Source: Saccostrea echinata (lineage: Eukaryota). Taken from it: a stretch of DNA of 64,000 nucleotides. Each line of letters opens with the position of its first letter. The first letter of the stretch is position 1. The notes beneath the pieces are model-generated. The model was not told the DNA's origin and did not search any database. It worked only from the letters and a program-made list of their open reading frames with translations. Shown piece by piece: positions 35,651 to 52,602 of the stretch. Where the stretch lies: the NCBI RefSeq assembly GCF_033153115.1, contig NW_026889758.1:42160001-42224000 (forward strand), read 5' to 3'. The position numbers and the translations under genes are program-made.

Positions 35651-38600
35651 TCATGTTTGTTGATATCCATAGTATGCTTCTGAGAGTGCCTTATTTTTCT
35701 CCACACGTCTCTTGACGTGCTGCATTTTATTGGATGCCCCAGATAATTTGCAGGCAGACTTCATGACATTGGTCTGCAGAACAGCTGTGTCCAGGTCTGA
35801 GAAACCACAAGCTGACAAAGAACTTGCCTGTGAAAGAACAAAGAATGCTAAATACAAGCAATATGCATACAAAATTTCTATTAAAAGCAATATTCATTAA
35901 AATCAATGACATGATACAAGTTTAAAATACAGCTTTTATATGTCAACACTCAAATAAATGTTTTTTTAATTACATGTGTATCTGTGTCAACATTCAAATA
36001 AATGTTTTTTAATTACATGTGTATCTGTATTTCATCATTAAATATAATTTAAGGTATCTGTCTTCATTCAACCATGCAAATTGTTAGCAGAATGTATTAG
36101 CCATTTTTAGTTTGTTTTATTAGGTTTTATTCTGTTTTGAGCCAGTTTTCCACCTTACCTGTCTTTCCTTATGAAGCTTATTAACTACTTGTGATAACGA
36201 TCTGCTCTCCTCAATAAATGCTACTTTGTCTTCCCGCTGTTGTAAATTTTTGGATCCTTTGGAAATCATGCTTCTTGAAGACAATCTATCAATATGAATT
36301 AAAGGGACGACTTCAGAAAAACTTTGAAAAAAAACTAGAGATGTGTTTTGTTATTTAACTAAAACATACATTACACCTTTATTGTAAATCAAAGATCAAG
36401 GTCATGCAAGAACATCATGATAGCATACATAAAGCATCCTTATATGATGACTAGACGTCTAGATTAAATTTAAAGACAAACAAGCAAATTCAGCGAAGTG
36501 TAATCCTAGGCTTTCGGTGTCTTAGTGGTTGGGATGCAATTGTTTATGGCATATTGTAACTGTCTTGTTTGTGTGTCCTGTCTTGTCTGTCCCTCATACA
36601 AAGAAGATATAAATTTTTGAACGAATAAAAGATTAAAGCTTCTCAAAACTGTATCAATCATCAAGGTCAAAAATAATAATACAATCTGAAAGATCTTCTC
36701 ACAAGTAATGCACATGTGAACAAATATGAAAGCCTCATCTCTTCTGGAGCAAAAATTATGGCCAAAGTTAAATTTTTTGATAAGAAGGTCAAGCTTCTAG
36801 GTCAAGGTCATAAAGTCAAAAATGATAATTCTTTCTGTGAAGTGTTGTCATAGGTAATGTACAGGTAATATATGAAAGCCCTATCTTTTCTCACTCAAAA
36901 AAAAAAGGACTGTAGGTTAAACTTTAAGGTCAAGGTCAAGAGGTCAAAAGCCAAAGTTCATTTGGAAAGGTCTTGAAATAGGTAATGCACATGTCAAATA
37001 TAAAAGACCTTCACTCATTCAAAAGTTATCAACATTGTTCAATTTTTTGAAAATTAGGTCAAACTTCAAGATCAAAGTCTCAGGGAAAAAAATCATAGTA
37101 CATGTATGTACATTTAGAAAGGTTTTGTCAAAGGTAATGCACATGTGGCACCCTATCTTCTCTAATTCAAAACTTATCATTAATGTTATAATTTTTGAAA
37201 ATTATGTTAAAGTTCAAGGATATGAGGTTAAAAATAATAGTACATTTTTCTTGTCACAGGTAATGCAGTTGTAAAACTGTGGATGCCTTATCTTTTTCTC
37301 CTTCAACAGTAAGCAGCAATATAATTAATGATACATATTTTTTAAATTAGGTCAAATTTCAAGGTCCTAAGGTCAAAAATCATAGCATGTTCAGAAACAT
37401 CTTATCACAGGTAATGCACATGTTAAATATGAATGCCCCGTCTTCTCTCATATAAATGTTATAAGCAATCCTATTCTATTCTTGACAAAGAATTCCATAC
37501 AAAGTCCCTGAGAAGGATCCTAAGAATATCTTGGCCCAATACCATCTCAAATAGGACCTTCTCAACAGGTGTCAGCAAGAGGATATGGCCACAATCATCA
37601 TCAGAAGACGTTGGAATTGGCTTGGCCATGTACTTAGAAGGGACTCAGACAGCATTATAAAGACAGCTCTCTTCTGGACACCAAAGGGAAAACGGAAGAG
37701 AGGAAGGCCCAAAGTCACTTTGCGGCGGACAGTGGAAGCCAGAATAAAAGAACAAAAGAGAAGTTGGGGCACACTCCAAAAGCTAGCCAGTGACAGACAT
37801 GGATGGAGAAACCTTGTTACTGCCCTATACACCAAAGACATCACGAGCAGCAAGAAAGTAACTGTAAAAGAGATGTTAACTTGAAATTCAAAGAATTGTT
37901 GTCCCCTGCTTGTAAGGTCTGATTGCTTGAGGTGCAATGAGGTCTGATTGGTTGAGGTGTAATGATCAATCTATGGCATATTGTAACTGTTCTTGTCTGT
38001 CTTGAGGTCATAGTACATTGAGAGGTCTTTTCACAGGTAATGCATATGTGGAAAAAATATGAAAGCCCTATCTTTTCTTATTCATAAATTATGACCAAGT
38101 TCAAAGTGTTTTGTGGGACAAGTTTGCTCAGATAATCTTTCTTGTCGAAGAAAACAAGTTACTTGATTCTGAGTGAAACATCAAGATTATGCAGGTCATG
38201 ATAGATGTATAGTACCACATGACACAACTTATAAAAAGAAATAAAGGAACACAAATGATTATGAAAGAGAACCAGAGGTTTCTGACAAGACTGCAGCTCT
38301 ACTGGTGTGTACCTATACTAAAGAAAGATGTATCTTAGTATAGTCTTCTTATATGTCAAGTCTAAATGAAATCCAACCAAAACTGTAGCAAGAGTAATGT
38401 TTTGAAAGAATTTCACAGACATTTCTATACACAGTAAAACATGGCAACTTCCACTGTTGAAATCAAAAACTGATATATTGAATTATTAATATTGTCTACT
38501 TGTGTACTAAGCTCAATTCAAACTTGGATCTATTTTTAGTAACCATGGCACCACCATTTGTTGAAATCAAAAATATCGACTGATGCATCTTTGCATAGTC

Positions 38601-41600
38601 TACTTGTGTACCAAGTCTGATTGAAGTTTGACCAAAACTGTAGGAGGAGAATTTCAAAGAAATTTCTATTTTTAGTATTCATGGCAAAATCCTTTGTTGA
38701 AATCAAAACCTTACATAGAATTATGTATCTTAGTATAGTTTACTTGTATACCAATTCTTATTGAAATTGGGCCAGAACTGTAGTAGGAGTAGAGTTTTGT
38801 TTTCGAAAATTTGTTTACAGACAGATGGATAGAAGACAGACCAACAGGTGGACAATGGACACCTAATTAAATGCATAAATTCTTCTGGTCTCTGACCAGT
38901 AGAGCTATAAAATGAAAAGTGAATGGAAATCACCACCACCACCTGAATAAGGTGTAATAAAAAAATCAAATTAAAACATTAATTTTTTTTAACTTACAAT
39001 TTTGAGCGAGCATCTTCAATATCTCCTTTACTGGCCAAGTAAGCAGTCTTCTGGACTACAGCAGTGCCAACCACATTTACATTCATTGCCTATAAAATTT
39101 AGTAGTGGATATCTGTTAATTTTATATATATATGAGACTGATATAAAATATTTTTTTAAAAACTGATTTAATTTAAATTATACTTTTAATATCAGTTATT
39201 ATGATGAAACAAACTATTGGCAAGATAACTCCAAAATCTCTCTGATTTTAAGAGGAAATTAAACATTTCTGTTCAAATGTGATTACTGATAAATGTAAAT
39301 AATGGAAAGTGTTTGTTCTTGGCTTTATAACAGTTTAAAGTTGTTGTTTAGTTTGATGATTTCAAAAATATTAAGGTCTTCATTGGTGAGATAATAGCTC
39401 CTGTCACTTACTTTTCATGTGAAGGCTAATTTTTTAAAGATATTTTTTTATTTATGCCAGATCTAAAAAAAAATTTCAAAACTATGAGTTTACATACTTC
39501 CTCCATGGTCTGTCTGTTGTCTGTGGTAGATAGTGCTTTACTAATGGTTCTCAACATGTTTCTGCCATCCTTTAGTGTGTAAGAAATCTGTACCTATAGA
39601 AGACAAAAAGAATAAAATGTGCTGTAATTTGTAAATTACTAGATCAAACTTAACAAAGAGTGAATGTAATGAATCTAATACAATGTACAAAGTAAAATTA
39701 CAACAAAAAACAAAACAAAACCAAATAAAAAAACCCAAAAGCCTGCAAACTTTGTCAAATTAACACCTGTATCAATAACTAGATTACTGTGAGCAAGCTC
39801 ACAAAATTATACCCCTCACTGCAATTAAAAAATGCCTATATACAATTTTCTAAATGTGACTTTGAACTTGCCAAGATGCCTTGGTTTAAAAAGAGACACC
39901 CTCTTGTCAAAAGCAATCGTTGTGTGAAATATGGACATCCAATCTTTTTCATTTGAATTTTACATTTTTATTCTACCAGTGACCTTGAACTTGCCAGAAT
40001 GATCCTTGATCAAGGTTACAACATACCCTCAACTCCATATAATCTTTTTGGAGTATCAATGAGAGAGTTATGAACTGGGCACATTTTATATGTTTCTGCC
40101 AGTAACCTTGAATTTCCCAGAATGACCTTGGGAAGGTCATGTCACACCCTCGGGTCATAAGCAATCTTTGATAAGTATGAACTTCTAATGTTCTGCATTA
40201 CAAGATATGGTCAGTACATGAATTGAACATTTTGTAAAGGTGACCTTGAACTTGATAAATTGACCCTGGGTCACTCAGGATCATGACATACCTTCAGGTC
40301 ATAAACAATCTTTGTATGAGGTATTAACTTCCAATGTTTTTCTATGAGGAAGTTGAATCTTAAACTTTTCTGCCAGTGACCTTGAACTTGCCATAATGAC
40401 CTTGAGTCAAGGTCAAGACACACCTTCAGGTCATGAAGAATCTTTGTATTACAAGTATGAGCTTCCAATTCTTCTCCATTACAAAGTTATGGCCCAGACA
40501 TGATTGCACAGACAAACAGACAGACAAGGTGATTCCTATCCATCCCCCAAACTAATTTGCGGGGTCATAAATATTGGCTTCAACAATAAGTAGGGATTTA
40601 TATACTATATTAAGTGGGCATAGAAACATATCCATTGGATACATTCCCAAATGGTATTTGTACTCCAACATTAAAGGAATAATTAAATGTACTTGAATTA
40701 TTAACTGACCTAGAAATTTTGAAAAATGAAGTTCAAGATCATAAAAAAGGTCAAGGTCAGAACTCTGTTGTGTAGCATTCACAAATATATACCTTAGTAT
40801 GAAATTTGACTAAAATATCTTGAAAAATACAGTTAAAGGTCGTAGGAAAAGTCAAGGTCAGAAAATTACACATACAGTATGACACAGTTGAATAGCTTTC
40901 CTAAATTTGTATTATCAAGGTATGAAGTTTGATGAAAATAACCTGGAACAGTTTCTTTGAAACTAAGGTAATTGCAAAATAAGGAATAATGACATCAAGG
41001 TCGAAGGAAAAGTCAATGTTAGAACATTATGACAGTTGAATAGCTTTCACCAGAATGTATCAGTGTACGAATTATGATAAAAATATTTTGACCAGATTCT
41101 TTTAACCTGAGCAAAACACAAAGTGTGATGGATGCACAGAGAAATGGAAGGACAGAAGACAGACATGACAAACACAATATGTCCATGCCATAGTCATGGT
41201 GGGTGGGCATAAAAATGTTCACAGTAAACATGCTTATAACAAAGTACCAGGACAGAAGATTTTGCTTCCTTATATGCATAATTCATTATATTGGTTAACA
41301 GGTTAAGTTTACAATATTTTTTTTAAGTCATGGGGAATGAAAATTACTTCACCATAAGTATCAATTCATTACAAGTGTGTTTGCTATAAGCATGTTTTAT
41401 TGTATCTAGCTATGGGGCTCATATAAAAATTTTCTTTGTTGCCTTTGGTGAAATGCAACCATTTTCTCCTATATGTTTGTAGATAAGGATGCAAATGGTA
41501 AACACAAAATATTTTCATTTTAGCCAGATTTTGAATTCACTTAGACACTAAAAAACAGGTTTCTGATTTCCTTACTTGGAATGGTATTTTTTCAATGTCC

Positions 41601-44600
41601 AATTTTTTCCCAGGATTTTTCAACTTAAATGAGAATGTCATATCAGTATCTTTTGTAGCACTGCCCACCTCCTTAATTATCTTGCTACTGCCCTGCAAAG
41701 AAAAAATATATACCTGGTACATTTTAGTATCTATGTATTATTACTAGGGATGGCAATTTCTAACCGGTTAACCGATTACTCGGTCGGAACGATGGCAATC
41801 GGTTAGATAAACTGTAATCGGTTAGTCGAAAAAATTTTTAATATGTGTAAAAATGAAGGCAATCTTCTTAAAATCCATTTTTAAAAAAGAAATTCCTTCT
41901 TAAACGTTGATAAGTTCGCGTTTTCATATATATATATTTATTTAGGCTGATTGGGGGGAAATTATGGCTCTCCAGATTAAAATTATGGGGTAATTGGTCA
42001 GTCCGAGATGTGTTAATTACTGTTCAAACATCGTTACCCCGACTGTCCTCTAATTCTTTAATGATACTAATCGCCGTTGGGCACCGTGAACTGGTGTGTG
42101 TATCTTTTGCAGTTATTTATCAAATTAAATTATTAAACAAACATTGTAAATTAAGAGATACAGTTTAATCTTAGTTTTGATTATGGTGACAATGAAGAAT
42201 GAACTTGTGTGACATCCGCTCTGGAAAATTATCTACGATATCTCAGGCATGTTTCATAGTTTTCTGATTTTTTTTCTTGTCTACTGTAATAAAAAATATA
42301 TGCTTGTACATGTAGTTTTCTGATCAAGAATGTTTTTGACCTCTAAGATGTTTTTTAATACTTCTTGTGCGTGGGAATAGAACTTCCTGAAAAAAGTCAA
42401 GAAAATGTATAGTTTGATACGATTAACCGGTTAATCGGTCAGAACGTTTTGCGGTTAACTGATTAGCAATTCTGTATTCGATTGCCATCCCTAATTATTA
42501 CACTGAAAAATTTAGACAAGAGGCCAATGGACCACAATGCTCATCTGAGTCACTTTGGCCTGCTGTTTTTCATCTCCAGTATCTTCTAAATTTCCATCTT
42601 TAATTTAACAAAATTTCACTGTTGAGTACTGTGAACTGAGTGCAATGTGCATCTATCTTTTGCAGTTATCTGTCAAATTATATTTTTAAACAAACATTGT
42701 AAATTAAGTAATAGTTCAGACTCTGTTTCTTTTTTATGATGACAATGCAACCATGGCCTTGTGTAACATCAGGTCTGAAAAATTATCAATATCTTTGATA
42801 TCTAAGGAATGTTTCATTGTTTTCTTGATTTTTTCTTGCCTTCAGAAATTGAAATAAAATATTATAATATAAAGAACACTTACCAAGCATAAACAGACTC
42901 TTACTAACATCTTTGTTAAGTTTTTTCTTAGGGTTTACGTGATAAAAAAAGGTCAGGAAAATGTGTATTTTGATACGATTAACTGGTCAGAATGTCTTGA
43001 ATTAACCGATTTCCAATTCTGCATTCAATTGCCATTGTATTTAGACATCTATTTTATAAAAAGAAGTTTTACTGAATGTTAAATGTTCGGTGAAAAGAGT
43101 TTTTCAATTTTCTATTTCAAATACAGTTGAACTTCTGTATCTCGAACACCGATATCTTGAATACAATGGATATGTCAAAATGATTAAGAACTCCCAACCA
43201 CTTATTTTATAGGTATTTTCCCCTTGATACATGTATCTCGAATCCTCAAATATCTCAAAGTTTTTTCTCAGTCCCATCGAGTTCAAGATAAGGAAGTTTG
43301 ACTGTTTGTTAGGAATAATAACCTTAGGGAACCTAGGGTCATCAACTTCCAGCTCTGGATGGAGAAAAAGAGTGACCGTTACATATGTAGCGATGACATA
43401 ATTTTGCGAGATGAGTCGAAGCTGCCGAGAAATTTCCAGGGGATTAAGCACATTTACAGTGCCTCCAGAAATATCTGCACATTTGCTAACTTTCTCCAAC
43501 CCAGTTCTCTCCCCTTCCACAGCAAGAATGGAAATAGTTATGTTCTTCTTTTTGGCATATTGCCCAGCCTTCAAAAGAGAAATGTACATTGATTCAAATA
43601 TGTCATACAGGAAACTTAATATTCTTTCTATCAACAGCAAATACATCTGTATATTTACTAATCAAGCAAAGACAAATTCATCAAAGCATCAACTCTGTGA
43701 TTTATCTTACCTCCACATAGAAATTTGGATCCCTGTTCAAATTGCCTATGCCTCCATTTGGTGCCCCATCAGTACATAAAATAATCTCAGATCCCACAGA
43801 ACCATTGACAATCCCCAAGGCAGCAGAAAGGGCAGGGCCGAGACTGGTACAACCCTTCGGTCTTAGCTTATTTACTTCAGTCACTATTTTCCTGAAAAGT
43901 GGACATAAATTTTAAGTAAATTTAAACAACTGATATAAAATGTATGTCCCTCTGTTATATAATCTTAACTTTCCATATAAATAAGTGTTAAAACATGAAG
44001 TTTCTGATTTTTTGATTTGCATGGGCATTGCCCTTAAAGTTACTGGTAATATGAAAGGGGTCTTGAGTTGCACAGTTTAATTATTTCAAATTTCTAAACA
44101 TTACACATTCAGTAGATACTGATCAACTCAATAAAGTGATCATACATTTTAATATATCTTTATACCTATAGAAATGGATGTCCCTAGTTTTTTTTTTTTC
44201 TAAACTACATGTCCTCAGTACATGTATTAATATATACATTTAAAAAAACACAGATAATTACTGGTAGGATTCTGTTAAAGGCTTGATCTGATGTTCTGTG
44301 GAATACTTTTCTCCGTAGTTCAGTAATGGCTCAAACTCATTATGGATGGTGGAAGGCACAGTTTGTATTGTGTTGTCTGAACAATCTCCATAGACCTCCA
44401 CCTTTGACTCAAATGTCAAGAAGATCACTCGCCGCTCTGGATTGTCCAGGTGCAGTCGCTCTAGCTGCCTGTATAAAATCATTATTATTGCTTTGATAAA
44501 AGAGGATATACTCATTTCTTTATCAAAAAATTATTGCTGAACCCTTTTTTCCATCATAAGTCTTTCTTCATTACCTTTTTCACAACAATTAAAGTAAAAG

Positions 44601-47600
44601 AGGAATAAAGAAACTACTAGATGCCTATTTACACTCTATCCATGCATTTGCTTATTTGCATCTGTGACACAAATATGTCACGTAAAGGTATCTATGTAAT
44701 GTAAATTTGACATACTGTATAGGGGATTAATTTCACGGGTTGTAATTTTCATGTTGTTCTCTCCTCGGACACGATCGCGGTTTGTTGAATTCGCGGAATC
44801 GGTATATAATAAAAGTAACCTCCTTTGTCTTTATCCGTGTAATCCATAGTATAGCTAGAACGACATTCATCAGCGTTATGTATTCACTTCACGAACAAGG
44901 TAGGTTTATATAAAATTATTAGATTTAGTAGTTAATTGATGATTAATCAAAACAAGTGCTGTTATTAAAATTTTTTGACTATAAACATCAAATGACTTTC
45001 CTATATGCTTTTACGATGAGTGCACATCTTTCCGAAGGTATAACATATTGCAGCGGGGAAAAAAAACACTGGACGCTAATAAATATATTGATGTAGGTAG
45101 ACATAATAATATCCTTTCATATCTTCAGCATATTCGATAGTTATCCGAATGATATTTTTTAAACCAAAATTTCCATAAAAACTAACACGCATAATGCTAA
45201 ATTGCAGGTAACAAATACACGTACGTGGTAACGTTACGCACGGGTAATCAAAACCCATGTCCCATGTGTTTTGATTGATGAAACATGCATCTATTAAAAC
45301 AGCTTTTAAACAATAAAAACAGGTCATTAGCTGCTTATTTGAATTAAAGTAAAGCGTGATAATTAAGATAATTGAATGACAACTACGCATACGTGTACTA
45401 CTCGTAATTACTGAAATAAATGATCACGTATCGTACGTATATATACCTATCGTAGTCTATTCTCAAATTTCCAAATAAAACATTGAGGTTTAATATTTAA
45501 AATTTATTCACTGTTTCTTGAATTCACGGATTTATTAACACAGTGAATATAGCAAATATTTACACCGCAAGTTATTTTCCCCCTATACAGTACATATACT
45601 TATTATGCTGGACATTGTAATTGTGCCTGCATCTATTGTGTTGAAAAGGCCACCTACTCCATTACCTTAGGAGTGCCTCTTGTATGGCCTGAAGTCGAGT
45701 AACACTGTTACTGCCAGAAGCATTCTCCCCGTCTCTCTGTCTCTTCCATTCAGCTTTAAAACAAGGTAAAAAAAAAAGTGTAGCTTAAATTGAATGGAAA
45801 CATACAACACTATAGTACTGTAAACCAACATTAATTTGCCCACTCAAAATCTAGCACTGTGACAGTCTTTCTCATGAACTGTGTAGCGTAACCATAAATT
45901 AGTGCATTTGGAGCCAAGCTTCTGTATACTGGTCCGTATTTATTTTAATCATATACGGTCAAACCTCGTTATCTTGAACTTGATGGGGCCAAGAAAAAAA
46001 ACTTCCCAGAAATCCAAGGGTTCAAGATATTGAAGGTAAAATACTTCAAAGATATGGTTAGGATTACCCAGTCACTTTGACATATCCATGGTATTCTTTG
46101 ATATCCATGTTCGATTCGAGATATTTGAGTTCAACTGTATTAGCATCTACTTAAGTTAGTTGAAAAGAAGAAACACAAAAGGCACTAAAATATGATAATA
46201 TTTCATTATTATACCACTAAGTAAGTTTACAGCATGTCAAGATGCCTGAATTATTATTTAAATCATAATAAACAATATGATTTATTTTTCTAGTTTTGTC
46301 TTTAGGAGCTAAAAATCGCACATTAACATAAGCACAAATTGATACATGTACATCTACAAGGTAAGTGCTTTCCTAAATTTCTTAGGTTGGTTATACAGTT
46401 GAACTTCAGTATCTCAAACTCCAATATCTCCAATATCATGGATATGTCAAAGTGATTTGGTTCCAACTGCTAATTGTTTAGGTATTTTACCCTCGATATC
46501 TCAAATCCTCAGATATATCAAAGTTTTTCCTTGGCCCCGTCAAGTTCGAGATGACAAGGTTTGACTGTACTTGTCTGATTAACTAGAAATATGTCCATAG
46601 GAAATGAAAACCCCACCCAGGGTTCATCAGTAATGCAACAAAAAAAGAAAAGTATCCTGATCACTTTTTTGTTTCAGATAAGGGTACATTATGATCAATA
46701 GTAAGGTCAAGGTCATGGGAAGCTTAAGGTCAGAAAATTATGACAAAGTTGAAAAGCTCTCACTTACCGATATATGTATCAAAATATGAAATTTGATTAA
46801 AATATCTTGATTAGCTTCTTTTAAATTGAGCTAAACGCAAACTGTGAAGGGTGGATATATGGAGGGAAAGAAGGATGGAAGGTGGAAAAGACCAAAGGAG
46901 GAAGACAGACATGACAAACACTGTATGGCCCAGCCATATTCATGGCAGGCATAAAAAATATACATTTAGTTCAGTTTATGACTCCACTGATTTAAATATG
47001 GGCTTTTTCAAGACAACCATAATGTATGATATAAATTTTGATTTTAAAATTATTTCAAAATATTTTACATTACAGAGTCTTTGAATTGTAAGGAGAGCTA
47101 GTTTAACGATTGAAATTAAAGACCTTTCCCTCTTATTCCATTTAAAATCATCAAAATATTACCTGCCAGTGAAAAATAATATGATTGTTAAACATTTGAA
47201 GGTTACCTTGTAATTCGGGAAGCTGTGTGACTCCCCCCATAGATCCACTGATATCCAGACAGTACACCACGTATCCACTTCCTGTTGTTGCTGGTTTTGT
47301 AGCCTCTGTCTTGTCAGTTTCTTTTTCTGTAGCAGCTTGCTCTTCTGGTGCAGAAAGGGCATAATCTATGGTGTCTGATTTAGGAATTTCTTCTTTTCTG
47401 ACCTCTGTGGAGACATTTTTATGTCCACAGAATTCACTGAAATGTTACAATGGTAAACCCAAAATGAAATAGCAATTCCCTCTCAGAGTAACAAAAGATG
47501 CACTGAAAACAGTTGTTCACAAATATTCATCTTAAAGAATAATTTCCAAATGTTTTACCCAAAATGAAATAGCAATTCCCTCTCAGAGTAACAAAAGATG

Positions 47601-50600
47601 CACTGAAAACAGTTGTTCACAAATATCCATCTTAAAGAATAATTTCCAAATGTTTTACCCAAAATGAAATAGCAATTCCCTCTCAGAGTAACAAAAAATG
47701 CACTAAAAACAGTTGTTCACAAATATTCATCTTAAAGAATAATTTCCAAATGTTTCATCTTATAAAATGAGGTTTCTATGTGGATTTTTTGGGGATTATT
47801 TCTGAATCTTTCTAATATTGTTTATGTGTTTGTGTATGTTAATTACATCAAATTGAGAATTTCAATGTAAAATGAAGCAGACATTTACAATTCATATTTC
47901 TTAATTTCTCATCGTACAATTTAAGAGATTGCAGATTTGAACAAAAGTTCCAAATCATTCATATTTTAGAATTCAGTGACTTTAGTATTACCAATTCCAC
48001 AACAGTTTGTCTCCATCTTGTTGTGTCTCAGAGATACAAGACAACACAACCTGACATCCATCGCAATACACCGGGTCACCCGTAGCAACATTGTCCATCT
48101 GATCAAGATCCTTCATGGACACCAGGATGACATTAGTGTCTGCTTTCTGACATTTTATGGTTTTCTTGGACTTGGTAGGTGATCGTATGGGTGGGGCTGA
48201 CTTCCGTCGACTTGGGGGCCCTCTCCTTGTGTCACCTCTCCTCTGCTGTACGGGTAAGTCTTCTGCTGTGGCTGACCTTGGTCGGGACAATCTACGGGAA
48301 AAGATTCCACTAATGGAGGAGATGAAACTTCGTACCCTGGACACTTGTTTTCTGGGTCTTCCTTGTTCTTCTAAAGTCAACATTTTAAAATTAAAGTCTA
48401 CAGTGCAAAGTTTTTCTTGGGGGGGGTGGGGTGTTTTGGTTTTTTTGGTTTTTTTGTTGTTGTTGAGAAAATAGGAAAATCAGCACAAAGTGTTACTTTA
48501 CCTCATAAATATTTCATTTATTCATGCTGCTGTGTACTTGGTAATTACATGTATTTTCAAGTGAAAAGAAAAAAAAAACTTTTGCAATTATTCATGCAGA
48601 GAGAAATGAAAGAGAAATTACAATGGCATCTTAAACTAATTTAATTCATCAGATTGAAAATACATGTAAATGGGAGAATTATCAAACGCTTATATCTTTA
48701 ACTTAATTATACACCTGTGTGTATTATTTATATTTCATAAATGAAATACCTTCCTCAGCTTTTCTTCGTTTTCCCTTCACTTTGACCATTTTACGATAAG
48801 AGTCTTCTATGGTTGGATCATAGTCCTCAACAAATTGGTCTGCTACAAATCTAAGTGTCAGTGAAGATTTTCCTACAGCACCAGCCCCGAGCATGACAAT
48901 CTGTGATAGACAATAAAAGTCATCTCTAATTTAGAGAGTGAAATAGCATACTTTTGAATTTGCCTGACAATATGCATTATTGTAAACCTTCTGAGATGTG
49001 AGAAAAAAGTTCTCTTACGTGGCTTTAAAATCTCATAATTAGGAAAACTGCATTGTGATTTTCAAAAATATTTTTCTTTTTATCTAGTATTTAAATCATT
49101 TTAGTTTACAAATATCATAACAGTGATTTTCTTTTAAGTAAATCAAATTGTCTTATTTAGCCAATCTGCTTAATATGCACAAGTTAAATATATATCTTCA
49201 TTTACTTTGTGTGTAGCTTTGTGTTCCGGAATTTCTAAAACCAGATTCTCAAATGCCTCCTGGACAAGGCTTCCTGTTTTTGCAGATGTTTCTGTAAAAG
49301 GAATACCCAAAGTATCTGCCAATTTCTTCCCCTCTTCAAATGATACCTCCCTCTGATGTTCAAGGTCACTTTTATTCCCACAAAGAATCTGTAAAATTAA
49401 ATCTTAAGCTTAGCATAATTTTCCTTTTTATTTTTTTTTTTATACATACATGTATATATAATCATAACCATGAACAAAACCTCTCTTAAGATTCTATAAA
49501 TACTTTTACTGGGCATAAAACACCACATCACATACTGATCAGTTTGCCCTTAACAATCACATTTACTTTATGCTTAATTAAAATTTGAAAAAAGAAGGTT
49601 TTTAAATAGGGATGTCAAATTGGTCATCTTTTGATCATCAGTTATTCGGACTATTTTCTGATCGAGAACCATGATTAAATGATGTTCATTAAAAAAAAAA
49701 ACTCCAAAAATAAAGGGCCACTATAAGTGAGAAAAGCTGTGTTCTAGTATATACACAGCCAAGGCCATGCAATAACATATAATTACTGGTGTAGGTAATG
49801 CTAATTACTGTATAGACATGGACATAAATTATTGACATTTTCTTAATAAGTTTTTGATAAATATATTTATACTTTGAAATATGAAAAATAAATGAGTACC
49901 AATTTTAGTATTCAATACTCAATTGCTATCTAATAGACCTATGAACTCTTTGTCTGCCATTTTTCAACCTACCGCAGGTGAATTTTCCATGCCTTTAATT
50001 TTCTGAACAAGACGATAAATGGCTGAAGCTTCATTGAAGGATGATCTGCTTGTAATGCTGTAGATAATCATAAAGCCGTCCCCTGATGTCATGTACATCT
50101 CTCTTGTAGAGGAGTACTCTTCTTGGCCTGCTGTGTCCAGAATATCCAAGCAACATGTCTGGAATCAAAGAATAAAAACCATGAGAACCATGTGTCCATG
50201 ATCTCCAAGCAATATATGTTAATCAAAGCATAGAAAGCATGAAATACATGAGTCTATGCATGATCTCCAAGCAATATGTGTTAATCAAAGCATAAAAAGC
50301 ATGAAATACATGAGTCTATGCATGATCTCCAAGCAATATGTGTTAATCAAAGCATAAAAAGCATGAAATACATGAGTCTATGCATGATCTCCAAGCAATA
50401 TGTGTTAATCAAAGGATAGAAAGCATGAAATACATGAGTCTATGCATGATCTCCAAGCAATATGTGTTAATCAAAGGATAGAAAGCATGAAATACATGAG
50501 TCTATGCATGATCTCCAAGCAATATGTGTTAATAAAAAAGCATAGAAAGCATGCAATACATGAGTCTATGCATGATCTCCATGCAATATGTGTTAATCAA

Positions 50601-52602
50601 AGGACAGAAAGCATGAAATACATGAGTCTATGCATGATCTCCAAGCAATATATGTTAATCAAAGGACAGAAAGCATGAAATACATGAGTCTATGCATGAT
50701 CTCCAAGCAATATATGTTAATCAAAGGACAGAAAGCATGAAATACATGAGTCTATGCATGATCTCCAAGCAATATGTGTTAATCAAAGCATAGAAAACAT
50801 GAAATTCATGAGTCTATGCATGATCTCCAAGCAATATGTTATTTTAATCAAAGCATAGATAGCATGAGACCCAGCTTAAAAAATGCTCCTTCACACCATG
50901 CTCACTAGCCCATTCCTCCTCCCCCCGAGATTTGTTTGAAGTTAAAAGTCATGAATACCAGAGTAAATTGATTCTGCGGTCTTTTTCTTCATTTTTTAAT
51001 ACTTTATTTACTGTAATAAACAATCTGTTACAACATTAAACAAATTTTAACATTTTTACAGACTGTGAATTTTGAGAGAGTTGGCATAATTTGTTTTCAC
51101 ATCTTTCATTTACATGAATAAAGATTGATTTTCTTCTTATTACAGATTTTAGCATAATAATAATTCCTCAGAGACCCACAGGTGATTATACCCTTCATTC
51201 CTCCCTAAATTAAGGTGAGAAGAATGAAGTTGAACTGTTTAGAGATCATGGGACCCAGGTTTGAATCCTGATCTGATTCTGTGGCTTAAGGCTGTATGCC
51301 TTCAAACCTGGGCCCCACGATCTTACCAACAATACTATCCGGCCACTGGTGATTGCATGAAGCTGCCTGTCCCCCTATTTTCCTCAAATGTATTTATACC
51401 CCTGCAATTAAGACACCAACCAAACCCTTGAGTTTCATCCCTAGCAGGTTTTGTACCTGTCACATCCATGAAATTACACATTAATATTAAATGTAACAGG
51501 GAGAAAATATATAGGACAGAATTGACCAGAATTCCAGCCTAGGCCTGCTGAACTCTAGACTTCTGAGATTTCTGACTGTAAGTGATCAAATTTGCCTAAT
51601 TTTATCTACATTATTTCTTAATATTTTGTTAGTATATGATTTAGAAAATAAAGCAGTGTGGCATAACATGTTTTAACTCCGGGCTTTTAATAGTTGGGTG
51701 TACATAAATTTACACCAAGCAAAATTTGTCTTACTTAAGCTACATAGGGAATAACAAATAGTATTTAAACTCTTCAGTAAAGGTATTTATAAACTCTTGA
51801 CTTTTTTTCTCTCAATAAGCTATATGCTTACATTTCAAAAGCTGTGAGCTGAAATGTGATCTCACTTGACTGAATTTTACCCGCAAAAGGTAAGCTATAT
51901 GTATGCAATCTCTGTACAATAAAAACCATAAATACCAGGCAATAAAAAAATTAAAATTCCGACGGATTTATGTATACTTCAAACTTCAAATAATCAATAT
52001 GTTAGATTTCAATCTAAAAATGAAAACCATAGGAAATTAAATGATAGTCTTAACCTATTGCAAACCATTAGAGAAATAAGTACATGCATATAAAATTGTT
52101 TTTCACATGTTTTCTATTGCAAACTGTACAGTAGCAAATCATGCATTTTTAGTATATGGAAAGTCATGAATAATCAAACCTAACTGCTTCAGTCTCTGTA
52201 CGTAAAGCAATTAAAGTGTAATGATAGAGAACAATTAAACCTTTAATGGATGTTTGACCTTATACCATGTCTGTACATAAATATAAAGCTCTGTTAAACC
52301 ATGCATATACAGCCAAACCTCATTATCTCGAACTCAATGGAACCGCAAAAAAACTTTGAGATATCCGAGGATTCGAGATATCCGGGGTAAAATACTTAAT
52401 AAGGGGTTGGGACATATTCATGGTATTTGATATATCGAAGTTCAACTGTATATTGAATTAATCATGCCATGAGTGTACAAACCTCTTCATCTCCATTTTG
52501 AGGATCAGCTTCTTCTTCCTTCTCCTCAAGATCATCTTCCTCAGGTATGTCCTCTTCCTCGTCTGTCCGACCAACGTACACAAGGTTTCCTCCAAACTCC
52601 AT
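35651..52602 (-). CDS. cpras1: Circularly permuted Ras protein 1-like (cpRAS domain + Sec23/24-type Zn finger + VWA + beta-sandwich/helical region), ~859 aa, 15 coding exons
   Basis: Exons 52602-52483, 50158-49973 (G3 DTAGQEEY), 49388-49206 (G4 NKSD, G5 ETSAK), 48900-48750 (G1 GAGAVGKS, G2 YDPTIEDSY), 48370-47992, 47436-47207 (CDGC...CEFC; YCLDISGSM), 45753-45666, 44468-44262, 43891-43711 (TSLGPAL, ILCTDG), 43568-43323, 41692-41576, 39593-39498 ([21 protein letters not shown]), 39089-38998, 36285-36159, 35827-35651. All junctions are GT-AG and phase-consistent with no internal stop. Confidence 0.9.
36640..38120. mobile_element. AAGGTCAAGGTCA-type satellite-carrying element in a cpRAS intron, interrupted by a LINE fragment
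   Basis: Several degenerate ~140-bp units (CACAGGTAATGCACATGT...GAAAGCCCTATCT) on both sides of 37490-37866. Related arrays at 39780-40570, 40700-41215, 46580-46935 and 20520-21000. Confidence 0.65.
37490..37866 (+). mobile_element. 5'-truncated RTE-clade non-LTR retrotransposon (3' end of ORF)
   Basis: [20 protein letters not shown], a frameshift, then [44 protein letters not shown]...WRNLVTALY, the typical RTE C-terminus. Confidence 0.88.
41745..42493. mobile_element. hAT-type MITE, complete
   Basis: TIR TAGGGATGGCAAT ... ATTGCCATCCCTA with perfect 8-bp TSD ATTATTAC (41737-41744 and 42494-42501); subterminal AACCGGTTAACCG repeats. An older partial copy follows at ~42610-43036. Confidence 0.9.
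43122..43306. mobile_element. Tc1/mariner-pogo-type MITE (TA-CAGT...ACTG-TA); family copies at 45954-46139, 46394-46569, 52308-52450
   Basis: Shared ~145-185-bp sequence with TACAGTTGAACTTC / GTTTGACTGT termini and internal ATATCTCGAA motifs, present in both orientations. Confidence 0.8.
44713..45592. mobile_element. Non-autonomous DNA transposon with TACTGTATAGGGG termini
   Basis: TACTGTATAGGGG at 44713 and CCCCTATACAGTA ending 45592; interior is CpG-rich relative to the host intron. Confidence 0.75.
47457..47756. repeat. 100-bp unit x3 tandem repeat in a cpRAS intron
   Basis: Units start at 47457, 47557 and 47657 and are nearly identical. Confidence 0.95.
50197..50866. repeat. 62-bp minisatellite (~10.5 units) abutting the acceptor of the cpRAS G3 exon
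   Basis: AATCAAAG recurs at 50221, 50283, 50345 and onward; unit CATGATCTCCAAGCAATATGTGTTAATCAAAGCATAGAAAGCATGAAATACATGAGTCTATG. Confidence 0.95.

Follow-up and report, generated by a model that had tools for sequence, protein, structure and literature searches.

A Circularly Permuted Ras GTPase Joined to a Sec23/Sec24-Type Module in the Oyster Saccostrea echinata

The Gene and Its Transcripts

The window analysed here, a 64,000-nucleotide stretch of Saccostrea echinata contig NW_026889758.1, contains a gene of 15 exons on the minus strand, at approximately 35654-52602 (Table 1). In its product, a circularly permuted Ras domain is followed by a basic, disordered linker, a zinc finger of the C4 type, a VWA domain with complete MIDAS, a beta-sandwich and, finally, a helical tail. 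The exons are colinear on an 848-residue O. edulis protein, to which they are 60-91% identical (tblastn), and their summed lengths (the exons were not joined into one sequence) give a protein of ~855 codons, close to the 859 residues of a preliminary description of this DNA; all motifs named in that description were found where it had put them on the minus strand (ORF scan, tblastn). The N-termini of O. edulis isoform X1 and of P0009 both place the start of exon 1 at 52602 (tblastn). At the other end, the stop codon lies near 35654, and orthologues end at the same YYxY motif as the C-terminal YYGYQQT.

Table 1. Exons of the permuted Ras gene, in transcript order; positions are those of the window
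Exon	Position	Strand	Content	Basis
1	52483..52602	-	Start codon and acidic N-terminal tail, 40 codons	ORF scan; donor inferred from frame and GT
2	49973..50158	-	cpRAS beta3, G3 DTAGQEE, switch II	Pfam Ras profile 50-102; RNA joint 49388/49973
3	49206..49388	-	G4 NKSD, G5 SAK	Pfam Ras profile 130-160; RNA joints on both sides
4	48750..48900	-	G1 P-loop GAGAVGKS, G2/switch I YDPTIEDSY; last permuted-Ras elements	Pfam Ras profile 4-49; RNA joints 48900/49206 and 48370/48750
5	47992..48370	-	Basic Ser/Arg/Pro-rich linker, N-terminal beta-strand of module, first CxxC	RNA joints
6	47207..47436	-	Second CxxC, loop, trunk beta1 with MIDAS DISGS	RNA joints
7	45665..45753	-	Trunk: insertion and start of helix alpha1	tblastn; RNA joints
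8	44262..44467	-	Trunk	RNA joint 44467/45665
9	43711..43891	-	Trunk with MIDAS Thr (GCTSLGPAL) and Asp (CTDG)	Aligns to Sec24A ALGPAL region
10	43323..43568	-	Trunk end ADISGGTV, beta-sandwich start	
11	41576..41692	-	Beta-sandwich strands, end ...IPFQ	Bounds inferred from frame and GT-AG
12	39498..39593	-	Last beta-sandwich strands	Via family profile aligns to Sec24A FQSALLYTSSKGERRIRV stretch
13	38997..39089 (approximate)	-	First helices of helical domain	tblastn; aligns to Sec24A helical-region start
14	36156..36284 (approximate)	-	Helical domain	tblastn; helices 746-792 of orthologue model
15	35654..35812 (upper bound approximate)	-	Helical-domain end, C-terminal YYGYQQT, stop	ORF scan, tblastn

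The gene is expressed, and its Ras exons are united with its zinc-finger and VWA exons in spliced transcript contigs. A 3,003-nt contig (run X1) runs through seven exons on the minus strand, from 50158 to 44261, with GT..AG introns, and contigs with the same exon joints were obtained from runs X2, X3 and X4 (two studies). The junction between Ras and linker, 48370/48750, is crossed by single spliced contigs in runs X1, X2 and X3, again from two studies; the RNA joint makes 48370, the upper bound previously given for the feature, exactly the first base of exon 5.

The Permuted Ras Domain and the Linker

The segments of the Pfam Ras profile occur in the transcript in the order 50-102, 130-160, 4-49, and all five GTPase motifs are intact in one chain, in the order G3-G4-G5-G1-G2, with the RAS-family TIE motif in the G2 of exon 4. 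In the PDB, the family profile matches KRas and HRas best (E ~1e-68). Ras matches are present in 33 of the 52 family members, whose lengths range from 585 to 1071 residues.

Beta2 is separated from the Sec23/24-like module by a basic linker of ~90 residues, rich in Ser, Arg and Pro; in the model of the O. edulis orthologue, pLDDT stays below 50 from residue 202 to 263. Switch I had been described as standing directly upstream of the module, an arrangement that this intervening disordered segment contradicts, and because the linker is flexible, a rigid coupling of Ras to the module through the chain is disfavoured. The Ras domain is probably placed against the core in the model: with 92 of the 848 residues disordered, its pTM of 0.85 would otherwise be hard to attain.

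The Ras and VWA parts of the gene are set apart by a linker that is poorly conserved.

A Sec23/Sec24-Type Module

The C-terminal ~570 residues are a Sec23/Sec24-type module, composed of an N-terminal strand, a treble-clef C4 zinc finger, a trunk, a beta-sandwich and a probable helical domain. The assignment rests on Pfam, a profile search of PDB sequences, Foldseek and two VIA-align searches, which bear out the Sec23/Sec24 domain order proposed in the preliminary description.

When the profile of the module was compared with PDB sequences, the first 21 of 64 matches were all Sec24 or Sec23 (E 5.2e-16 for the best, Sec24A, and 2.1e-8 for Sec23). The Sec24A alignment spans the zinc finger, trunk, sandwich and first helices and includes the shared hallmarks ALGPAL, (S/T)GG and FQ..YT..G..R.RV; the zinc finger, between the N-terminal strand and the trunk, is aligned to Sec24A 68-116, and the position of the beta-sandwich after the trunk is backed by both this alignment and that of the folds. 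The closing stretch of the sandwich that begins with PFQ spans exons 11 and 12, with PFQ itself at the end of exon 11. Exon 10 as a query retrieved 327 matches at E<=1e-3 among representative sequences. Among ten full-length homologues, Pfam zf-Sec23_Sec24 (PF04810) was matched by nine at E<=0.1 (three above the curated cut-off), Sec23_trunk (PF04811) by eight (three above cut-off, one of them the O. edulis orthologue with 34.7 bits) and Sec23_BS (PF08033) by seven, none above cut-off (13.7-20.9 bits vs 33.5). At E<=0.01, the trunk was found in 33, the zinc finger in 29 and the beta-sandwich in 29 of the 52 family members (best Sec23_BS match, 6.5e-06); VWA_2 is present in 51 of them. Single exons of the window had no Sec23-family match in Pfam, and a PF04811 profile search of the genome, which located three canonical Sec23/24 loci elsewhere, did not recover this locus; the homology is thus seen only with full-length relatives or profiles.

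Structural comparison was done with models of relatives of the window's own protein, namely the O. edulis orthologue (pLDDT 85.3) and, second, a Batillaria fragment. All Foldseek matches listed, to rank 46, are Sec23/Sec24 chains (E 4.7e-22 to 6.1e-16). VIA-align superimposes model residues 280-820 on Sec23A 33-617, with 465 residues aligned at Z 25.4 and rmsd 4.8, and a search independent of Foldseek, in which the second model was compared with 48,161 chains, returned Sec23A and four Sec24 chains at the top (Z 20.5-23.1, 478-488 residues aligned). Only ~170-190 residues of generic VWA proteins could be aligned, so the outcome that the preliminary description had named as its refutation, a likeness to generic VWA proteins and nothing more, did not occur. 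Identity to Sec23/24 is low, 12-16% by Foldseek and VIA-align.

Two cysteine pairs upstream of the VWA domain form the zinc finger, CDGC being encoded by exon 5 and CEFC by exons 5 and 6 together. A Cys codon is split by the intron: LLWN ends exon 5 (47992) and EFCGHKN opens exon 6 (47436), a junction confirmed by the RNA joint 47436/47992. The MIDAS is assembled from DISGS of exon 6 and the T of GCTSLGPAL and D of CTDG of exon 9, and in the O. edulis model these residues occupy the canonical sites after beta1, before a helix and after beta4. In an alignment of the 52 family proteins, the four cysteines are kept in 50, as are the D-S-S-T-D residues of the MIDAS, and the motifs are therefore not due to chance. 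By contrast, the oyster's own Sec24 has DVSFN at the first MIDAS motif and its own Sec23 has DTCMD, while human Sec24A has Q at the position of the family's MIDAS Asp (profile alignment). The predicted metal site is intact in the oyster cpRAS-VWA protein and degenerate in the Sec23/24 of the same animal.

In the helical region, the fold alignment reaches Sec23A residue 617, at model residues 820-831, and ~30 residues align to Sec24A by profile; Pfam Sec23_helical (PF04815) was matched by none of the 52 family proteins. The chain ends ~30 residues past the aligned helical domain, and the Sec23A alignment stops before the gelsolin-like domain; the 24 Pfam families listed for the 52 proteins include no gelsolin-like family. 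The suggestion that the protein is too short for a gelsolin-like domain thus holds: the domain is absent. It is the part of Sec23 in which Bi, Corpina and Goldberg are reported to have placed, in 2002, the arginine finger with which Sec23 acts as GAP for Sar1; the domain that would supply such a finger is lacking here.

Relation to the cpRAS-VWA Family

The locus is very probably an expressed oyster orthologue of CPRas1, or cpRAS-VWA, which combines a permuted Ras domain, a linker and a ~570-residue homologue of the Sec23/24 core. The family was first described by Elias and Novotny (2008; Biol Direct 3:21, PMC2430557), who found in eight species a short variable N-terminus, a Ras domain of the order G3-G4-G5-G1-G2 with a TIE-type G2, a variable linker, a four-cysteine finger and a VWA domain carrying the Pfam label "Sec23/Sec24 trunk", in proteins of 840-970 residues. 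The oyster gene shares this whole architecture, its ~855 residues are inside the published range, and no difference in the gene was seen; in NCBI the O. edulis orthologue bears the name "circularly permutated Ras protein 1-like". The oyster gene is thus a member of a known, annotated family, not of a new one.

The 2008 paper took the trunk label as an alternative name for VWA and held that the architecture gives little clue to function; its main text mentions neither the beta-sandwich nor the helical domain, COPII or MIDAS, and the only molluscan proteins listed (Lottia) are Ras-less relatives (PMC2430557). Our literature search found no experiment on any CPRas protein, and in the literature searched we did not find the presence in cpRAS-VWA of the whole Sec23/24 core minus gelsolin, the intact MIDAS as against the degenerate one of the oyster's Sec23/24, or the Ras-less paralogue in the same oyster genome. 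The family is absent from many eukaryotes (PMC2430557); according to another paper (PMC13393502), CPRas may go back to the last eukaryotic common ancestor.

Ras-less zinc-finger-VWA relatives, whose C-terminal module is the same and includes the zinc finger and MIDAS, form a separate group that includes proteins of Dictyostelium, Entamoeba, Lottia, Capitella, sea urchin and ciliates (PMC2430557). One such paralogue is present in the S. echinata genome (C12:20643448-20647368), where the zinc finger and MIDAS are kept and no Ras exon is found within ~18 kb upstream.

A Possible GTP-Switched Adaptor

Recognition of a specific Sec23/24-type core, rather than merely a VWA domain, opens an otherwise uninformative architecture to test in three respects: a coat-adaptor fold may be acted on by a small GTPase of the same chain, a metal-dependent ligand site that was lost from COPII may persist, and the protein may pair with the Ras-less paralogue as Sec23 does with Sec24. 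Tentatively, we infer that the protein could be a cytosolic GTP-switched adaptor, in which nucleotide-dependent docking of Ras on the Sec23/24-like core gates a ligand site at the MIDAS. By analogy with Sar1-GTP on Sec23, the Ras domain may dock on the core according to its nucleotide state and so gate a predicted, MIDAS-dependent site at which a peptide, acidic or phosphorylated, would bind. As the counterpart of the Sec23 domain with the arginine finger is missing, a GAP from outside would be required for GTP hydrolysis. Recruitment to membranes could come from the basic linker and from a putative pairing with the Ras-less paralogue, in the way that Sec23 pairs with Sec24.

A bolder and rather improbable extension places CPRas and its Ras-less paralogues beside Sec23 and Sec24 as a third, ancient lineage of their superfamily, one that retains an ancestral, ArnB-like MIDAS. 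They would then form a self-contained GTPase-plus-adaptor pair, Ras taking the part of Sar1 in cis, the paralogue that of Sec24 in a heterodimer, and ligands being held at the metal site. If so, an "inner coat" of minimal make-up and distinct from COPII would survive in scattered eukaryotes, perhaps closer to the Sec23/24-like proteins of Asgard archaea than COPII is. With this family, a eukaryotic branch enters the discussion of how archaeal VWA proteins gave rise to the inner coat of COPII.

Comparison with COPII and ArnAB, and Alternative Readings

COPII Sec23/Sec24 and cpRAS-VWA agree in the order and fold of their domains, from the N-terminal strand through the beta-sandwich and probably on into the helical domain (Z ~25, 465-488 residues), and both are tied to a small GTPase; in the oyster protein it is a permuted Ras-family domain fused in cis, in COPII the separate Sar1. 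The oyster protein differs in its lack of a gelsolin-like domain, its intact MIDAS, its low identity and the patchy distribution of its family among eukaryotes. Sulfolobus ArnB/ArnA and bacterial relatives (8s05, 5a8j, 4fx5) likewise combine a VWA domain bearing a functional MIDAS with a beta-sandwich, helical parts and an association with a zinc finger, but in ArnAB the finger is on a separate protein, ArnA, and control is by phosphorylation via an FHA domain, not by a GTPase. ArnB-type VWA proteins of archaea and bacteria have these parts without belonging to any coat, so a role in trafficking does not follow from the fold by itself.

The module may instead be a VWA scaffold with a regulatory task, like ArnB, WAV3, TFIIH-p44 or Rpn10, whose MIDAS and zinc finger serve to assemble complexes in signalling or linked to ubiquitin, with Ras as the input, no membrane or coat role, and a likeness to Sec23/24 that reflects common descent of the core. 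We consider this somewhat unlikely. The alignments with ArnB (8s05) and with a VWA protein of Catenulispora (4fx5) extend over 340-354 residues (Z 19-22.6), yet those with Sec23/24 take in 110-140 residues more, and the profile matches Sec23/24 at far better E values than ArnB (0.083) or 4fx5 (0.39). VWA domains that bind ligands typically have an intact MIDAS, which the oyster's Sec23/24 have lost, and the ArnAB paper (PMC12852372) reports a MIDAS with bound ion, an ArnB-like core in Sec23/24 and WAV3 E3 ligases as close structural matches. Ubiquitin-linked functions are also hinted at by a RING finger on Naegleria CPRas (PMC2430557) and by Pfam RING families in two of the 52 family members, whereas a zinc finger in cis, at the Sec23/24 position, speaks against a scaffold of this kind.

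It is very unlikely that the protein functions as a COPII paralogue in place of Sec23 or Sec24, together with Sar1 and Sec13/31 in ER export, even though Sec23/24 chains are its best matches by sequence and fold. The protein lacks the gelsolin-like domain, to which a review (PMC6775307) ascribes Sec31 binding, and is only distantly similar to Sec23/24, of which the genome already has its three canonical loci; its own GTPase is of Ras rather than Sar/Arf type, and, unlike essential COPII components, its family is missing from many eukaryotes. Finally, that the fusion is an artefact, a neighbouring Ras gene and VWA gene read as one, has no observation in its favour and next to no probability, being refuted, barring chimeric assembly, by the single spliced contigs that cross 48370/48750 and opposed by the Ras matches across the family and the architecture published for eight species (PMC2430557).

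Transcript Evidence for a Single Ras-Sec23/24 Chain

The oyster gene encodes one expressed chain in which a competent-looking Ras-type switch is joined to a Sec23/24-type core that has a metal site and is without Sec23's GAP-finger domain. The family to which it belongs is already known: the cpRAS and cpRAS-VWA proteins were defined by Elias and Novotny in 2008 (PMC2430557), who described cpRAS-VWA proteins as 840-970 aa long, with 40-66 aa of variable N-terminus, a linker, four Cys that possibly form a zinc finger, and a domain known to SMART as VWA and to Pfam as Sec23/Sec24 trunk. They recorded these proteins in lancelet, sea urchin, sponge, a choanoflagellate, Capsaspora, Acanthamoeba, Naegleria and Dictyostelium, together with Ras-less relatives, one of them in the mollusc Lottia (PMC2430557). 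The trunk was equated with VWA by a reviewer, the authors found that the architecture gives little functional clue, and the main text contains neither COPII nor MIDAS (PMC2430557). A more recent study places CPRas potentially in LECA (PMC13393502, 2026). Literature searches returned no experimental paper on CPRas and no description of a full Sec23/24-type core. The demonstration of the whole core, its retained MIDAS and a Ras-less paralogue are additions to a known family.

The AT-rich window (GC ~0.33) derives from an animal genome, and the nearest database protein, from Ostrea edulis, bears the NCBI name 'circularly permutated Ras protein 1-like'. On the minus strand, open-frame pieces lying at 35.6-52.6 kb are colinear with the 848-aa O. 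edulis orthologue (P0003): 14 window segments cover its residues 23-847 at 60-91% identity, and the start exon at 52602 adds a fifteenth piece, matched by the N-termini of O. edulis isoform X1 (P0151) and of a further relative, P0009. All inspected splice sites are GT-AG, and the separate exon lengths add up to ~855 codons.

Contigs from four public runs (X1-X4, presumably RNA), which represent two studies and no more than three samples, were compared with 44261-50158, the stretch of the seven exons 2 to 8. Six intron-less joints were found, and at each the skipped stretch has plus-strand ends CT..AC, equivalent to GT..AG on the minus strand. All seven exons occur together on one 3,003-nt X1 contig; the same exon chain is found on an X2 contig of 1,499 nt, and parts of it on contigs of X3 and X4. 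Since the introns are removed, the contigs derive from spliced transcripts, and since they span both exon sets, Ras and zinc-finger/VWA, the two belong to one message; a gene-fusion artefact is rejected on the same grounds.

Coordinates of transcript joints and other features at the CPRas locus
Feature	Position	Strand	Source or detail
Intron-less joint	44467/45665	minus	run contigs
Intron-less joint	45753/47207	minus	run contigs
Intron-less joint	47436/47992	minus	run contigs
Intron-less joint	48370/48750	minus	run contigs
Intron-less joint	48900/49206	minus	run contigs
Intron-less joint	49388/49973	minus	run contigs
Single-letter differences	44297-49306		24, window vs run contigs; mostly exonic
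Minisatellite	50197-50867		62 bp, 10.7 copies, 95% matches; much of exon 1/exon 2 intron
Tandem repeat	47457-47755		100 bp, 3.0 copies, 97% matches; zinc-finger-splitting intron
High-depth intronic stretch	46428-46624		summed contig depth 56 to 1,378 in all four runs vs ~2-20 on exons; many loose ends around
99-aa ORF	37585-37884	plus	exon 13/14 intron, opposite to gene

The single-letter differences are consistent with allelic variation or with runs X1-X4 coming from a close relative (strain or species). The high-depth intronic stretch is probably a dispersed repeat transcribed elsewhere, and the 99-aa ORF may encode the C-terminus of some retrotransposon protein.

Sec23/24 Homology by Sequence

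At the level of single exons the Sec23/24 relationship does not show: in nine single-exon translations Pfam picked out pieces of Ras but none of the Sec23 families, the exons being too short for the divergent module. A genome-wide search with PF04811 found three canonical Sec23/24 loci on contig C2 without picking up the CPRas locus. With exon 10 (82 aa) as query against 1.84 billion representatives, E<=1e-3 was reached by 327 proteins, E<=1e-10 by 58 and E<=1e-30 by 4.

Full-length proteins are more informative. When ten full-length homologues were individually tested against Pfam at E<=0.1, Ras was matched in all ten (cut-off passes not counted), zf-Sec23_Sec24 in nine and Sec23_trunk in eight, each with three matches above the curated cut-off, including P0003 at 34.7 bits for the trunk. 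Sec23_BS was matched in 7/10, always at profile positions ~33-86 and never above the cut-off; Sec23_helical and Gelsolin were matched in 0/10, at this threshold or above the cut-off. Across the 52 members of the family alignment A1, matches at E<=0.01 were to VWA_2 (51), Ras (33), Sec23_trunk (33), zf-Sec23_Sec24 (29) and Sec23_BS (29).

A full-length A1 profile compared with PDB sequences was swamped by Ras, which is present in all of the best 60 matches listed; this prompted a further alignment, A2, from 30 members lacking Ras motifs. Not every row of A2 is truly Ras-less: P0015, in the first row, represents the C-terminal part of a Batillaria gene model that was split, and other short rows may be fragments. 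The split model looks faulty, since this gene (P0015/P0154/P0153) is annotated as 598-aa and 247-aa models in one version and as 841 aa in a newer one. Among 177,635 PDB sequences, the A2 profile has 64 matches at E<=10, and Sec24 or Sec23 proteins take every one of the first 21 places (Sec24A, 5.2e-16; yeast Sec24, 1.4e-14; Sec24B, 2.2e-12; Sec23A, 2.1e-8); 3rag (2.9e-4) is the first match to an unrelated protein, with INTS14 at 0.025 and ArnB (8s05) at 0.083. The alignment to Sec24A spans the zinc finger (68-116) and, at 193-522, the trunk and sandwich into the first helices, and the CPRas module and Sec24A share the hallmarks ALGPAL, an (S/T)GG motif and FQ..YT..G..R.RV.

Sec23/24 Homology by Fold

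An AlphaFold2 model of P0003 built on A1 has a mean pLDDT of 85.3 and pTM of 0.85, and confidence is low nowhere but in residues 1-15, in the linker (202-263) and in 366-378. In a Foldseek search of the PDB, all listed matches down to rank 46 are Sec23/Sec24 (E 4.7e-22 to 6.1e-16, ~580-655 alignment columns), followed by 4fx5, ArnB (8s05) and 5a8j. VIA-align of the Foldseek candidates superimposes model residues 280-820 on Sec23A (3efo_A) 33-617 with Z 25.4, rmsd 4.8 and 465 residues aligned; TFIIH p44 and Rpn10-type VWA domains reach Z 18-20 over an aligned length of only ~175-190 residues. A second model, of the module alone (the Batillaria fragment P0015; pLDDT 82.0, pTM 0.77), was compared with 48,161 representative chains without Foldseek. 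Its top five matches are Sec23A, yeast Sec24, Sec24B, Sec24C and Toxoplasma Sec24 (Z 20.5-23.1, 478-488 aligned), with 346-354 residues aligned to ArnB-type proteins and ~155-200 to plain VWA domains.

Sec23/24 thus comes first by both sequence and fold, and the Sec23/24-like module proposed in the preliminary description stands: matches confined to generic VWA proteins, named there as the result that would speak against it, were not what the A2 profile, Foldseek and VIA-align returned. A generic VWA domain and nothing else is rejected by the A2 profile search and both VIA-align comparisons.

The Zinc Finger, the MIDAS and the Missing Gelsolin Domain

Every motif that the preliminary description had reported is found on the gene. 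An intron interrupts the zinc finger: exon 5 holds CDGC, a further Cys codon straddles the junction, and exon 6 goes on with EFCGHKN. The complete MIDAS consists of DISGS together with the T in GCTSLGPAL and the D in CTDG. In A1, the four Cys are kept in 50 of the 52 proteins (exceptions P0009 and P0064), as is D-S-S-T-D (exceptions P0126 and P0009, where the region is missing from the gene model). The P0009 model, which has no DISGS region and an incomplete zinc finger, looks faulty. The CPRas module has kept its MIDAS, whereas canonical Sec23/24 proteins have lost theirs: in the oyster's own proteins the first MIDAS motif reads DVSFN in Sec24 and DTCMD in Sec23, and human Sec24A has Q at the position of the MIDAS Asp.

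The Sec23 arginine finger lies within the gelsolin-like domain. No such domain was found in the CPRas chain: the Sec23A alignment ends at residue 617 of ~765, the modelled chain ends ~30 residues further on, and orthologues share a terminal YYxY motif at the chain end, in agreement with the earlier suggestion that the protein seems too short to include it. The Sec23 domain order cited with that suggestion likewise matches the five-domain order of SEC23, i.e., zinc finger, trunk, a beta-barrel, an alpha-helix and a gelsolin domain, in PMC6775307.

A Possible GTP-Gated Adaptor

The Ras domain is permuted across exons, with Pfam Ras profile positions 50-102 in exon 2, 130-160 in exon 3 and 4-49 in exon 4; the resulting motif order is G3-G4-G5-G1-G2, and every motif is intact. 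Switch I and beta2 are the last Ras-domain elements. Switch I had been described as lying directly upstream of the module, but a ~90-residue basic Ser/Arg/Pro-rich linker, predicted to be disordered in the orthologue model, intervenes. The earlier interpretation is right about homology and the missing gelsolin domain and wrong about direct linkage; docking is a likelier route than the chain for sensing the nucleotide state. The full-length model's pTM hints at a defined Ras-core arrangement.

We tentatively propose a cytosolic adaptor in which the GTP-bound Ras domain would dock on the core and gate a ligand site or an assembly state, GTP hydrolysis would depend on an outside GAP, and the basic linker or partner proteins would provide contact with the membrane. 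Only slightly less likely is the main rival, in which the protein would be a regulatory VWA scaffold like ArnB/WAV3 and play no part in a coat. ArnB combines VWA, beta-sandwich and helical domains with an occupied MIDAS, and the Sec23/24 core is itself called ArnB-like, in PMC12852372; ArnB-type proteins rank behind Sec23/24 in the searches by sequence and fold. A working COPII subunit is rejected, since the gelsolin domain is absent and the chain carries its own GTPase.

A Ras-Less Copy and Distant Relatives

The same genome holds a second copy of the zinc-finger/VWA/beta-sandwich module on the minus strand of contig C12 (C12:20643448-20647368; loci L021 and L022). This copy is closest to members without Ras motifs (P0128 and P0140) and retains the zinc finger (CxxC pairs), DISGS, TALGPAL, CTDG and PFQ..Y; no Ras-like exon was found within ~18 kb upstream at E<=1e-3.

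Distant members of the family were found in transcriptomes of Diphylleia, Cavostelium and Soliformovum and in metagenomes, where one member (P0145/P0166) lies on contigs of up to 104 kb. In a language-model look-up with P0003 280-848, the module adjoins eukaryotic Sec23_trunk/VWA clusters; two neighbouring clusters are mostly Asgard archaeal (Promethearchaeota and Thorarchaeota; score 0.97) and carry Sec23_trunk, Sec23_BS and zf-Sec23_Sec24, a lead, and only that, to the origin of the module.
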